From positions 28,582,001 to 28,646,000 of the forward strand of contig NC_043018.1 of assembly GCF_006345805.1 (NCBI RefSeq): a stretch of 64,000 nt of DNA, in the 5' to 3' direction. Each line of letters opens with the position of its first letter. The first letter of the stretch is position 1. The notes beneath the pieces are model-generated. The model was not told the origin of the DNA, did no database searches, and saw only the letters and a program-made list of their open reading frames with translations. Shown here in pieces: positions 43,006 through 64,000 of the stretch. This DNA is from Octopus sinensis. Taxonomy: Eukaryota. Position numbers and translations under genes: made by a program.

Positions 43006-43207
43006 ATTCATCGCAGCAAACACCGTCGGCAACACATCGTCCTTGTCCGTCAGTTCCACACGGCACCCCTTTCACAGAACATGCTGTCGTGCTCTCGTTT
43101 TCCTCATTGCATTCCTTTGCGAGTGTGCCTATGATGCAACCGTCTTTGTGGCAGCATATGTTGGATCCAACACACTGGCCTTCACCATTTGGTCCGCAAG
43201 ACATACA
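43006..43207 (-). CDS. CT/OP: Neurophysin core exon (exon 2) of the cephalotocin/octopressin (vasopressin/oxytocin-family) precursor
   Basis: Translates to CMSCGPNGEGQCVGSNICCHKDGCIIGTLAKECNEENESTTACSVKGVPCGTDGQGRCVADGVCCDE (67 codons + 1 nt, 12 Cys in neurophysin spacing). The acceptor is a pyrimidine tract ending TTACTAG|TGT (phase 0) and the donor is GAAT|GTAAGT (phase 1), the intron positions known from vertebrate OXT/AVP genes. Confidence 0.97.
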
Positions 43208-43574
43208 CTAGTAATTAAAAGAGAAAAAAAAACAGACATTTTTCATAAAAATATATACAGACTCTTTTATATTACACATTTATGTGTACACGTCCAATCA
43301 TAAATATGATCATGTTTGAGTTGCGTGTTCACTATAAACAAGTAGGAATAACAATTCAAAGGAAATAATCGTACTCATACAGAAGAGATCCACTGTTCCA
43401 CATTTACGTTTGTATGTCGTAAGCATGCACATACGCAAACACACACATATGCATATTTACAAGTATTATATATATATATATATATATATATATATATATA
43501 TATATATATATATATATATATATATATTATATATATATATATATAATATATATATATATGTATATATATATATG

Positions 43575-43760
43575 TTGTTGGAATTCACAGAAAAACAAAA
43601 GACGAAGACAGATGTATAAAAACAAGAAGGTGTATTAGTTCGACACTCGGGAAAGTGAGAAAGTGTTTTACGTTTCGAGCCTACGCTCTTCAGCAGAAAG
43701 GAACAAGAGGAAATAAACGTAGAGGGAATTAGAAAAAACTTGCGGTCAATCATGGCGATA
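43575..43760 (-). mobile_element. Non-autonomous Penelope-derived repeat, family 2, with hammerhead-like motif at 43665-43700
   Basis: CUUU-CUGCUGA-A-GAGC-GUAG-GCUC-GAAACGUA|AAAC; homologous to copies at 44815-44990 and 48740-48815. Confidence 0.55.
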
Positions 43761-44437
43761 TGGATATATATATATATATATATATATGTGTGTGTGTGTG
43801 GTGTGTGTGTGTGTATGTATGTATATATATATATATATATATAACATATATATATATGTATATACATATATATGCATATATATACATATATATATATATA
43901 TATATATATATATATATATATATATGTGTGTGTGTGTGTGTGTGTGTGTGTGTGTGTATGTATGTATGTATATATATGCATACATATATACATACATACA
44001 TACAACTATAGATAGCTGGGGAGAAAAGGAGAAAGTGTTACAGTTAGGATTGTGTACGAGTGAATAAACAAGGAAAACATTTATTAACTCGAAGTCTTTT
44101 ATGTATTTTAATAACATTCGAAATAGCAGAATCTTTTTAATATATATGCAACTAAATCAGTCTCAATATTTAACTAACAGTACACACTACTAAGTACAAA
44201 GTTTGTGAGGTTATGTATTGTGTGGTGAGGTTATGTATTTCCTGCTGAAATAGAAGACGTATTTTCTAAATTAAAACTACTGTTCCGATTCCGTACCATT
44301 TGTGAGAATTCAACAATTTTTGGAAGGTTATATTTTGCTTTTCTCCTTTGGTTTTTTCCTCTATATTTTCGTTGTTATATTAAAGCGTACCAAAAATTGA
44401 ATTGATTTAGTTTTCTTGGTACTTGATATAATCTGCA

Positions 44438-44530
44438 TACTACTACTACTACTACTACTACTACTACTACTACTACTACTACTACTACTACTACTGCTAC
44501 TACTACTACTACTACAAACTACTACTACTC
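44438..44530. repeat. (TAC)n array
   Basis: Directly visible. Confidence 0.95.
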
Positions 44531-44814
44531 TATAAGATTCCTTGATTGCCTCTAGTTGCAATTTCGTCTGTATCAGTGAGAATATATAAGCCATATATTC
44601 AAATACTTTGTATACAAATTGTATTAGAATCTGTCTATTTATCTTTCTATATCTGTTTCTTTGTTTCTAACTGTCTGTCTGTTTCTTTCTCTCTCGATCT
44701 CTCTCACCTTCTCTCTCGCTCTCTCACTCTGTAAATATATATATATATACATATATATATGTATATATATATATATATATATATAATATATATATATATA
44801 TATATATATAGGGA

Positions 44815-44990
44815 GAGTTTAGGAAAAAACCCAAAGACGAAAACAGGTGGTGAACAAAATAAACAGATGTATTAGTATAACGCTCAGGAATAGAAAAAGT
44901 CTTTTACGTTTCGAGCCTACGCTCTTCTACAGAACGGGACACAGAAAACAAGGAGAAAAACAAGGAGAGAAAAAATGTGTGTAGTGCCTA
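44815..44990 (-). mobile_element. Penelope-derived repeat, family 2, hammerhead-like motif at 44901-44936
   Basis: CGUU-CUGUAGA-A-GAGC-GUAG-GCUC-GAAACGUA|AAAG; same family as 43575-43760. Confidence 0.55.
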
Positions 44991-45619
44991 ATATATATAT
45001 ATGTGTGTGTGTGTGTGTGAGTATATATATAGATATACGTGTGTTATTGTGAGGGCGAATGTGTATGTATAACAAAAGTAAGAAAGGGTGATAATCACAA
45101 GAATGGGCAATTGTCCAAAAGTGAGGATCCATTTAGGATACAACAGTCCCATTATACTCATCGTATGTTGATGTTTCCATCCCGATGGGTGTCATCAGTG
45201 TAGCATTTTATCCGACTTATCTTCAGCAGACTAGACCCTAATATATATATATATATATATACATCGATATATACAGACAGGAATACAGACAAGTACACAT
45301 GCACACACACACACACACAGACACACATACAAACACATACACAAGCACACACGTTTATACAAACTCATACAAACTACGCATACATGCACACACACATACA
45401 TGCCAAAACCCTTAAAGAAATTTAACACACGTTCTAGATAACTCAACATCACACCGATAGAATGGGAGGGAAGAAAATATAAAGGCAAATGTACTGAACA
45501 CCCCAACTACACGCCCATTTTCCTGACTAATCTAGTGTATATTCCTTTTTCTTTCTACTACCCAATATAATAAATATCACACCCACGAAAATATTTGAAT
45601 AGCTAAGAATATAATATAG

Positions 45620-61115: not shown

Positions 61116-61711
61116 ACAAGCAGTAGCGGCATGCTAAATACAGTAGTCAAAATGACCACTTGTGGTTTGGTCAGTTTGGCTGCTATATTTAGCATGCCGG
61201 TTCTGCTTGTTAGTACCCTTAATCATTAATTGACTATATATATATATATATATATATATATATGTTATTCGGATGGGCGATACTACCGGTTGCATTAAAT
61301 CCGGTGCTGAACTGGTACTTATTTAATTTATCTCAAAAGGATAACAAAAAAAAAAATAATAAAATAAAATAAATGAACTAAAAAGCTGAACACACCTTGT
61401 TGGGATTTGATCTTAGAAATAGTGCCTGCATTGTGCTCGGTATACTAACGATTCTGCGAGTTCGCTTATACTCTACACTTTTGTTTTTGTCTTTTTTTTT
61501 CGTTGTATATTTCGTTTTTTTTATCTGGTTTTATCGTTTTTTTATCTGGTTTGCAAGATTCCTTATGTGTTGTCTCTGGGGAGGGTGACATTGTTTTAAT
61601 GCCTTTTCATCCAACACACTCACCGGTTCGATTTCCACTCATTTATTATATATATATATATATATATATATATATATATATATATATATATATATATATA
61701 ATATATATATA

Positions 61712-62105
61712 TCTTTTATATATAAAAGTAAGGTTGTGTTGTATGTCTCCTACGATTTAGATTCCTAGCTACTCCCACATTTTGCGGTGCAGTTTAACCA
61801 AAACCGGGTATCTTATAGTTGTGATTCATAACGAGCCCCTCTGGGTATTAGCGCGCGTCTACGATGAGTCTACGATTTAAAAAAAAATTACCATCAAGTT
61901 TTCCCATTTTTAATGCATTTTTGGCATATATAAGGGAAGTAACTCTCTAAAAATTTATTATTAAATCTCAGAACGTAAAAAGCTACACTAACACCCCTTC
62001 TTTGTGATTAGCCATATTGAGATGGCTATTATACTTTACATCTCTAAAAATGCTTATATAGTTATTTCCCTTACAAACCTGAGCAACGCCGGGCGATACT
62101 GCTAG
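61712..62105 (+). mobile_element. Non-autonomous Helitron
   Basis: A|TC 5' end, 3' CGCCGGGCG hairpin followed by CTAG|T, no TSD; second copy at 29821-30085. Confidence 0.75.
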
Positions 62106-62246
62106 TATATATATATATAATATATATATAATATATATATATATATATATATATATAATATATATATATATACATATATAATATATATATTAATATATAT
62201 ATATATATTATATATATATATATATATATATACATATACATACATT

Positions 62247-62705
62247 GTGTAGTAAGTAGCTTGTTTACCAACCACATGGTTCCGGGTTCAGTCCCACTGC
62301 GTGGCACCTTGGGCAAGTTTCTTCTACTATAGCCTCGGGCCGACCAAAGCCTTGTGAGTGGATTTGTAGACGGAAACTGAAAGAAGCCCGTCGTATATAT
62401 GTATATATGTATATATATAATAATATATATATATATATATTATATATATATATTATATATATATATTATATATATATGCGTGTGTTGTGTGTGTGTCTGT
62501 GTTTGTCCCCGTAGCATTGTTTGACAACCAATGCTGGTATGTTTATGTCCCCGTAACTTAGCGGTTCGGCAAAAGAGAACGATAGAATAAGTACTGGGCT
62601 TACAAAAGAATAAGTCCCGGGGTCGAGTTGCTCGATTAAAAAAGGGTGGTGCTCCAGCTTGGCCGCAGTCAAATGACTGAAACAAGTAAAAGAGTAAAAT
62701 AAGTA
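62247..62705 (+). mobile_element. SINE family A
   Basis: Head-to-tail homology with expanded internal microsatellite. Confidence 0.9.
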
Positions 62706-63295
62706 TATATTTTCCTTCCAAAATTGTCGTTGCTTTTACAACACTCCGTCCGTTATTGGAATTATGAGAGTCAACATCCATTGACAAGGTTGGAAGAGCA
62801 ACCAAAATTTTGGAAGAAAATTATATATAAATAATGAACCGTGAGTGGAAATCGAACTGGTGAGTGTGGTAGATAATTAAGTATTAACACAATATCACTC
62901 TTCCCAGAGACAACAAAGTTTCGCTGTATATTTCTGTGAAGTAAAGGGACATAACTCTATTTTAACTATTGCTGTCTTCGTGTTTTTATTCTTATTTTTC
63001 TGGATAAAATAGAGGCGGGAAATATTTCGATCCATTGGGATCCTTCCCTCCGTTCCTCTGTCACGATTCGCCTTTCCTTATCTATCTCTTTTTCTTTCTT
63101 TCTTTCTCTTACTTTCTTCTGTCTACCCTCCCCTTCCCTTTATGTCTTTCTTTTTCTCTCTTGGTCTGTTTCTCCTTTTTCCTCTCTCTCATACTCTTTC
63201 TGCGTGTGTGTGTGTTGCGTCTCTCTTCTCTCTCTCTCTCTCTCTCTCCGCCTCTCTCACTCTCTCTCCCTCTCTCCTGCGCCTGTTATCTATAA

Positions 63296-63725
63296 TTTTT
63301 TTTACTAGTTTCAGCTCGAAACTTGCGGCCATGCTGGGGCACCGCCGTTAGCTTTGCTACACTTCCACAATTCGAAACCTCCTCTGATATGCAGCATTGG
63401 TGAATGACGGAGTTTGATGATGCCGCCCTCATCTGAGTTTCCTGCTGCGAGGTACGTTCATCGGGAACTCTTGACAGGAAGAGATCCCGTTTTGTTTCGA
63501 AGATACCTACATCCGCCCCATGTAGGTTTCTCAGGATTTGTGGGCCCTTGAAACTCAAACTTTTGCAGTATCTGGTCCTGTATTCTGGTGGCAATATTGG
63601 GATCCTTGATACTATGCAGTGGCAGCACCTCGTTCTGCTCTTTGTGTAACTTTCAATGCCAAAGTGTGGCGCATGCCCTTCCAGGATTTTCCAGATACAT
63701 ATCACTGTATATCGTTCTGTATATG
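63296..63725 (-). mobile_element. 5'-truncated CR1-type LINE 3' end with tail
   Basis: ERYTVICIWKILEG..YCKSLSFKGPQ..LFLSRVPDE..RAASSNSVIHQ, followed by the 3' tail GGCGGTGCCCCAGCATGGCCGCA...CTGAAACTAGTAAAA. Confidence 0.8.
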
Positions 63726-64000
63726 CCCTGATTCCAAATACTTCCACGTGTATACAAATACATACATAGGATCAGCAGCGAGACATCATGTGGTGCATCA
63801 TTCTAGAAGCCTCTAGAATATTCTCCAAACAAGGGCTATAGATACGTAAGCACATTTTAAGCACCAGACTTTAGTTTGTGGCCACTCGCAACTAAGTCAA
63901 CCACATGTTCATTTTACTGCTTTATAACGTGTGTGTGTGTTTTGCTTGTCACCCTACCATAGTTTGACAGTCGGTGTTGGTTTGTTTAGATTCCCGTAAC

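Follow-up and report, generated by a model that had tools for sequence, protein, structure and literature searches.

A probable single gene for cephalotocin and octopressin in Octopus sinensis, with one neurophysin exon between alternative first and last exons

The shared neurophysin exon and its terminal exons

The stretch of DNA analysed here (the window) is 64 kb of the Octopus sinensis genome, with 100% identity to chromosome CM016880.1 of GCA_006345805.1, and carries on its minus strand the neurophysin-coding part of a gene of the oxytocin/vasopressin family. The octopus hormones of this family are cephalotocin (CYFRNCPIG) and octopressin (CFWTSCPIG), and a first-pass annotation of the window had proposed that both are made from one locus, in which alternative first exons are spliced onto a common neurophysin exon. 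As a comparison locus we used the orthologous region of O. vulgaris (L001; OX597835.1, 115 kb, N-free). The coding exons present in the window, and the sequence between them, are the following:

43006..43207, minus strand: shared exon 2 (202 nt), encoding the neurophysin core CMSCGP...CCDE and the first base of the next codon, with a phase-0 acceptor and a phase-1 donor
28724..28983 (coding sequence 28983..28880), minus strand: terminal exon 3a, RDKN type, encoding (S)ACSSNARCNTSGGRSKTLKDLLLILNKMYRDKN and a stop codon; its 3′ untranslated region (UTR) reaches at least to 28724
3879..3979, minus strand: terminal exon 3b, YYKK type, coding sequence only, encoding (S)SCFTTDRCDRENHRSMAMQKLLEIRDGIYYKK and a stop codon, the C-terminus of both published precursors
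28984..43005, minus strand: intron of 14.0 kb that separates exons 2 and 3a, rich in TA/CA microsatellites and copies of short interspersed elements (SINEs), collinear with O. vulgaris at about 95-98%
3980..28723, minus strand: about 24.7 kb separating the two terminal exons, an intron for YYKK-type transcripts and, for RDKN-type transcripts, downstream of the poly(A) region

Exon 2 is entered through the acceptor ...ttaattactag/TGT, which lies behind a polypyrimidine tract and is in phase 0, with the Cys of CMSCGP as first codon, and it is left through a phase-1 donor (GAAT/gtaagt). This start had been read correctly in the first-pass annotation: on the minus strand, 43207..43006 translates to CMSCGPNGEGQCVGSNICCHKDGCIIGTLAKECNEENESTTACSVKGVPCGTDGQGRCVADGVCCDE plus one base of the following codon, with 100% identity to the published precursors over 67 aa (tblastn E about 1e-47). 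It corresponds to residues 53-119 of the cephalotocin precursor (P0001, Q76DN0) and to residues 46-112 of the octopressin precursors (P0002 and P0007). Twelve of the 14 neurophysin cysteines are encoded by exon 2 and the remaining two by either terminal exon (CFTTDRC or CSSNARC), and all of them occupy invariant columns in the alignment. Exon 2 matches Pfam PF00184 (Hormone_5) when joined to the YYKK exon (69.6 bits) as well as when joined to the RDKN exon (68.2 bits), with a cut-off of 27.2. No second copy of exon 2 is present in the 64-kb window, where tblastn gives it once and the earlier statement of a single neurophysin copy is borne out, or in the gap-free 115-kb O. vulgaris locus.

A single terminal exon had been annotated at first, but two are found on the same strand, the YYKK exon at 3979..3879 and the RDKN exon at 28983..28880, both with phase-1 acceptors and with stop codons. 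The acceptor of exon 3a is ttttcctag/CTGCC, its coding sequence matches the second precursor type (tblastn E=1e-19), and AATAAA hexamers are found at about 28802-28700. In L002, an RNA-seq contig from a related octopus, exon 2 is joined to exon 3a at exactly the predicted junction and the transcript then extends 260 nt into the UTR. The acceptor of exon 3b is tttgcag/CC; this exon ends with ...GIYYKK and a stop codon, and has an AATAAA about 98 nt downstream (about 3781). Splice sites of exon 2 and of both terminal exons are canonical and their phases compatible. Both terminal exons are supported in transcripts or products, RDKN in L002 and P0002 and YYKK in P0001 and P0007, which gives two alternative last exons, each with an acceptor, a stop codon, a poly(A) signal and evidence of use in transcripts. 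Of the earlier suggestion that only exon 1 was duplicated and that exons 2 and 3 are common, the part concerning exon 2 is therefore retained, while exon 3 exists in two alternative copies.

The RDKN tail scored higher than the YYKK tail (31-60 versus 17-38) against all 10 non-octopod C-termini compared, two from decapodiforms and eight from other animals, whereas the YYKK tail matches the tail of the cephalotocin-type product of Argonauta (score 80). On these scores, the RDKN exon looks ancestral and the YYKK exon looks like a duplicate of octopod age.

Hormone-specific first exons

The precursors of cephalotocin (P0001, 152 aa) and octopressin (P0007, Q76DN1, 145 aa) are identical over 100 aa, from CMSCGP to YYKK, as the first-pass annotation had stated. 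A difference inside the neurophysin, which it had named as a point against its proposal, was looked for and is absent between the two. The differences are confined to the signal peptide, the nonapeptide and the linker, and divergence begins exactly 5′ of 43207, so that the switch point coincides with the exon 2 acceptor, again as proposed. An additional form of octopressin (P0002, 146 aa) has the RDKN tail. All three precursors have the hallmarks of the vasopressin/oxytocin family, namely a signal peptide, a nonapeptide with Cys1 and Cys6 that ends in Pro-x-Gly, a GKR site and then neurophysin, and the two first exons are recognisably homologous.

A six-frame regular-expression search combined with tblastn found no exon for a signal peptide and nonapeptide in the window, whether of either hormone or of a third type. 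Applied to the O. vulgaris locus, this search gave one nonapeptide exon only, that of octopressin. The exons of this locus follow one another on one strand: octopressin exon 1 (10001-10135), exon 2 (68044-68245), the RDKN exon (from 81467) and the YYKK exon (105009-105109). Octopressin exon 1 ends with CAG/gtaagt in phase 0, with 57.9 kb separating it from exon 2 further downstream; for this reason, not finding a first exon in the window is uninformative. In the contig L002, octopressin exon 1 is followed by exon 2 and this by the RDKN exon, with junctions that agree exactly with the genomic ones, and the 341-nt 5′UTR of the contig is contiguous with octopressin exon 1 in the genome. Products of each first exon join the same acceptor, as seen for octopressin in this transcript and for cephalotocin in the cDNA-derived P0001.

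Further evidence on the splicing of cephalotocin is provided by 'cephalotocin-del' (P0103, 86 aa), a GenBank entry of 2003, which consists of the peptide of cephalotocin exon 1 followed by PPVLQPIDVTERIIAVWQCRNYWKY.MEFITRNK. Its tail is exon 3b read from its first base in frame 0, the shifted frame expected when exactly the 202 nt of exon 2 are omitted. 'Cephalotocin-del' thus corresponds to an exon-2-skipped mRNA, and cephalotocin transcripts are therefore spliced at these sites. The single amino acid by which it differs from the window is a synonymous change in the normal frame. A protein search with the 52-aa peptide of cephalotocin exon 1 returned 'cephalotocin-del' as the sole match.

At one position of the shifted frame 'cephalotocin-del' has Pro, as in the window (3979-3879), versus Leu in European O. 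vulgaris (105009-105109 of the comparison locus). The Japanese animals used in 2003 were, we presume, of the O. sinensis lineage, and this residue suggests that the 2003 Japanese 'O. vulgaris' clones came from it.

Collinearity with O. vulgaris and the assembly gap

Upstream of exon 2 the window consists of three segments:

43208..56926, minus strand: 3′ end of intron 1, of which 13.7 kb are verified and follow the O. vulgaris intron collinearly, with no exon 1 inside
56927..57026, no strand: assembly gap of 100 N, at which collinearity with O. vulgaris stops
57027..64000, no strand: post-gap segment, with repeat matches only; its membership in intron 1 is unproven

The window and the O. vulgaris locus are collinear, with about 97% identity, from the downstream end of the gene to window position 56925, the final base before the gap, which pairs with position 53971 in O. 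vulgaris. Continuity across the gap was the first point to be checked. For the segment 57027-64000, no collinear counterpart exists in the 68 kb that precede exon 2 in O. vulgaris, its matches there being dispersed repeats only, and the segment has no coding similarity to the cephalotocin or octopressin precursors. Since the far side of the gap is not collinear with O. vulgaris in this comparison, continuity across 56927-57026 is unsupported and the verified upstream sequence amounts to 13.7 kb. Judged by the O. vulgaris layout, 54 kb or more, with octopressin exon 1 among them, would be missing from the O. sinensis assembly here or misplaced in it. The first-pass annotation, which counted 20.8 kb upstream without an exon 1, is thus correct in that no first exon occurs anywhere in the window, but only the 13.7 kb are verified as intron. 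No coding sequence adjoins the gap, so the reading frame is unaffected.

A probable single gene for two hormones

We consider it very likely that the window holds the 3′ two-thirds of a single oxytocin/vasopressin-family gene of Octopus sinensis, a spliced gene in which either of two hormone first exons is joined to one exon 2 and then to either of two last exons. The central proposal of the first-pass annotation, one locus with alternative first exons on a common neurophysin exon, is supported by the single exon 2, by L002, by 'cephalotocin-del' and by the RefSeq isoforms X1-X4 of O. bimaculoides. These isoforms represent all four combinations of first and last exons and are listed on one 37.7-Mb contig. 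The gene range recorded for X1, the sole product on record, is 110.6 kb, and X2 and X3 are not recorded as separate genes. In Argonauta hians the cephalotocin-type gene spans 126.6 kb. The O. sinensis RefSeq products of the gene (99 and 100 aa) start at a Met inside exon 2 and are without exon 1. A search of 5.8 billion protein clusters returned no other Octopus neurophysin protein.

Measured from the ATG of octopressin to the stop codon of the YYKK exon, the O. vulgaris locus extends over 95.1 kb. Compared with the 110.6-kb range in O. bimaculoides, this would place the cephalotocin exon roughly 15 kb upstream (5′) of the octopressin exon.

Several points weigh against a single gene of this form. 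Cephalotocin exon 1 is absent from the window and from the O. vulgaris locus, which includes 10 kb 5′ of octopressin exon 1 and all of intron 1. Its position in the same locus is indicated by the RefSeq isoform numbering, the shared contig and the 110.6-kb range only, and is accordingly probable rather than observed. The combination of cephalotocin exon 1 with the RDKN exon is known only as a computed RefSeq model (X1). The count of exon 2 copies covers the two loci compared here, not whole genomes. Finally, Kanda et al. (2003), as cited in PMC7181382, described two single-exon genes on the basis of genomic PCR.

This last report bears on the alternative that intronless cephalotocin and octopressin genes, for example processed retrocopies, exist besides the spliced locus and are the functional ones. 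In addition to the single protein-coding exons described in that citation, a second set of GenBank proteins (BAC84977 and BAC84978) is identical to the cDNAs and may derive from that genomic work. Against this, carry-over of cDNA into the genomic PCR would yield the identical 2003 result, and no gene with exactly the cephalotocin product is recorded in the annotated assemblies. At the locus itself introns interrupt the precursor reading frame, one of 14 kb or 39 kb and, in O. vulgaris, one of 57.9 kb. The RDKN-type transcript requires splicing, and 'cephalotocin-del', as an exact skip of exon 2, is impossible to obtain from an intronless gene. We therefore regard functional intronless genes as improbable.

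A second alternative, to which we give still less weight and which appears very improbable, is that there are two paralogous genes as in vertebrates, with neurophysin exons equalised by gene conversion or by a very recent duplication, of which the window shows one. The second exons of vertebrate AVP and OXT are near-identical, which has been credited to gene conversion or purifying selection (PMC2656470), reviews credit cephalopod gene duplication with producing two genes (PMC7181382), and the scan for exon 2 was limited to the window and the O. vulgaris locus. However, the locus has one exon 2, and both types of exon 3 lie 3′ of it on one strand in the assemblies of two species, one of them gap-free. 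The published precursors are also identical through the entire YYKK exon, which is itself seen in one copy. The exon order 1-(1)-2-3a-3b is not derivable from a simple tandem pair of genes. Moreover, RefSeq numbers both hormone forms of O. bimaculoides X1-X4 on one contig, and the protein search mentioned above brought up no additional Octopus neurophysin. An assembly collapse of two genes was also considered and rejected, since the layout recurs in O. vulgaris, in a locus free of gaps, and the exons are interleaved.

A third possibility accepts the single locus but with fewer real products, only some of the four combinations being made in vivo and the choice of first and last exon perhaps being coupled, for instance with cephalotocin always carrying the YYKK tail. 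There is cDNA or transcript evidence for three combinations, cephalotocin with YYKK (P0001), octopressin with YYKK (P0007) and octopressin with RDKN (L002 and P0002), and the fourth is the RefSeq model X1. In agreement with coupling, the cephalotocin-type product of Argonauta has a YYKK-type tail and the octopressin-like products of decapodiforms have RDKN-type tails. Octopressin, on the other hand, occurs with both tails, so any coupling is not absolute. We give this restricted version of the single gene close to an even chance.

The literature search returned no paper describing a shared cephalotocin/octopressin locus, and a search for 'alternative first exon' in octopus gave one match, which concerns myosin-VIIa. 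The single-gene architecture is already implicit in the RefSeq isoforms X1-X4, but it contradicts the published description.

Other features of the introns

A dispersed repeat family of about 200-500 bp, with the core ...ggttccgggttcagtcccactgcgtggcaccttgggcaagtgtcttctactatagcc..., is found in both orientations throughout the introns. Copies lie at about 4100-4250, 42120-42260, 47800-48060 and 62130-62710 and elsewhere, and many are present in the O. vulgaris locus. Every match between the post-gap segment and O. vulgaris is due to this family. A scan of the window with Rfam gave no match at the gathering threshold, the dispersed repeat included.

Inside intron 1, the plus-strand stretch 50043-50318, possibly extending to about 51006, is what remains of a mariner/Mos1-type transposase (Pfam HTH_48, 63 bits); the open reading frame (ORF) 50872-51006 near it has no Pfam match. 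Also upstream of exon 2, the block 52700-53400 is made of low-complexity G/T-rich versus C/A-rich repeats, which produce long ORFs rich in Pro, His or Val on either strand, and has a strong GC skew (0.34 for 52001-54000); it looks like simple repeats, not a gene. Between exon 2 and the RDKN exon, the overlapping intron stretches 33360-34242 and 34080-34955 share 94.6% identity at an offset of about 717 bp, forming a local tandem duplication between long TA microsatellites. The non-collinear post-gap segment contains a 153-aa ORF on the minus strand (63286-63747) without a Pfam match, which may be a mobile-element fragment.

Discussion

In the mechanism that we propose, the two first exons, one for cephalotocin and the other for octopressin, would both lie outside the window, the former further upstream. 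Each would bring its own start codon, signal peptide, nonapeptide, GKR site, linker and phase-0 GT donor, and either one would be spliced to the acceptor at 43207. There would be two promoters, one per first exon, and the hormone made by a given neuron would be set by which of them fires, because a first exon has a donor without an acceptor and only the cap-proximal one is kept. At the other end, exon 2 would be joined either to the proximal RDKN exon, where the transcript would also be cleaved and polyadenylated, or to the distal YYKK exon. Either last exon would complete the neurophysin with the final two cysteines, leaving tails of about 24 residues that differ. Expression of octopressin is reported to be widespread and that of cephalotocin to be confined to the vasomotor lobe (PMC7181382). 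This difference would correspond to promoter choice, and hormone choice in general, with separate promoters and their tissue logic, would be of the same nature.

The intron positions argue that the octopus gene keeps an ancestral plan of three coding exons. The two introns of an oyster gene (L004) and of a killifish isotocin gene (L005) agree with those of octopus in position and phase, and exon 2 measures 205 nt in both, versus 202 nt in octopus. Octopus, oyster and killifish thus all have three coding exons, with one intron in phase 0 ahead of CxxCGP and another in phase 1 behind CCDx, and a genomic contig of a decapodiform gives a product (P0040) that reads across these exon boundaries too. 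Given that the two first exons are homologous, that there are two types of exon 3 and that exon 2 is single, both flanking exons would have been duplicated on this plan and the middle exon not.

The nearest known counterparts are the vertebrate pairs AVP/OXT and vasotocin/isotocin, which share with the octopus gene the PF00184 domain, three coding exons, the same intron phases (in killifish isotocin) and two hormones with an identical or almost identical central exon. In vertebrates, however, there are two complete genes whose middle exons are kept alike by conversion or selection, whereas in octopus there is one physical middle exon and the flanking exons are duplicated. The single conopressin-type gene of molluscs (terepressin/terephysin-like in Ostrea edulis) has the same exon plan and phases as octopus, and the RDKN-type tail resembles the C-termini of oyster, gastropods and bivalves. 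The oyster gene has each of the three exons once, within 11 kb, in contrast to the about 95-110 kb with two first and two last exons in octopus.

Two other kinds of gene offer partial parallels. In UGT1A and the clustered protocadherins, each variable first exon has a start codon and a donor of its own and is joined to a single acceptor that all of them share. By analogy, and on general knowledge of these systems, the octopus gene would resemble them in its alternative first exons, its common acceptor and a choice that is presumably made by promoter; it differs in having two variable exons and in that the variation concerns a secreted hormone and its signal peptide, not a domain of one protein class. 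CALCA (calcitonin/CGRP) resembles the 3′ part of the octopus gene in that a common exon is followed by a choice of two terminal exons, one proximal and one distal, which carry their own stop codons and poly(A) signals. In CALCA the 3′ exons encode different hormones, whereas in octopus they alter the neurophysin tail only and the hormones differ through the 5′ exons. With respect to the published octopus genes, as far as Kanda et al. (2003) are summarised in PMC7181382, the two peptides and the precursor sequences are the same as here. Unlike the single-exon structure given in that summary, we find introns of 57.9 kb (O. vulgaris), 14 kb and 39 kb at canonical positions in one shared locus.

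A wider proposition can be put forward tentatively. In it, the cephalopod hormone pair arose by exon duplication within one gene, and the architecture is old, being common at least to Octopus and Argonauta, with decapodiforms (sepiatocin/pro-sepiatocin) as possible further carriers. The promoter would be coupled to the choice of last exon, each hormone having a preferred neurophysin tail or C-terminal peptide, and no other member of the family would be known to use a single physical neurophysin exon for two hormones. No decapodiform cephalotocin-like (pro-sepiatocin-type) precursor was seen among the matches examined, about 17 of the 99 word-indexed ones, most of the others bearing non-cephalopod names, and 29 of the 150 representatives from the exhaustive search.

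A practical consequence concerns the measurement of the two hormones, since probes or primers in exon 2 or in the terminal exons, and single-cell methods that count 3′ ends, cannot separate them. Both 'cephalotocin' qPCR primers of PMC5736919 lie inside exon 2, at 43065-43084 and 43188-43207, and define a 143-bp amplicon within a single exon. Because they are both in the shared exon, this assay is blind to the distinction between cephalotocin mRNA, octopressin mRNA and genomic DNA. That study detected 'cephalotocin' in the gastric ganglion, where earlier work had found only octopressin, and its authors could not reconcile the two results; the shared-exon primers could explain this signal.

The RefSeq models X1-X4 are already public, so what is offered here is a reinterpretation of existing data, not a wholly new object. 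If there is one gene, it contradicts the statement, still repeated in reviews (PMC7181382), that octopus has two intronless genes which arose from a gene duplication like that of vertebrates. The alternative tails, of about 24 residues each, predict two C-terminal peptides that were not considered before. With a single gene, octopus and vertebrates would have converged at the level of the peptides only, by different genomic routes. The two lineages would also constitute a natural experiment on the identity of the central neurophysin exon, maintained by conversion or selection in vertebrates and by exon sharing in octopus.

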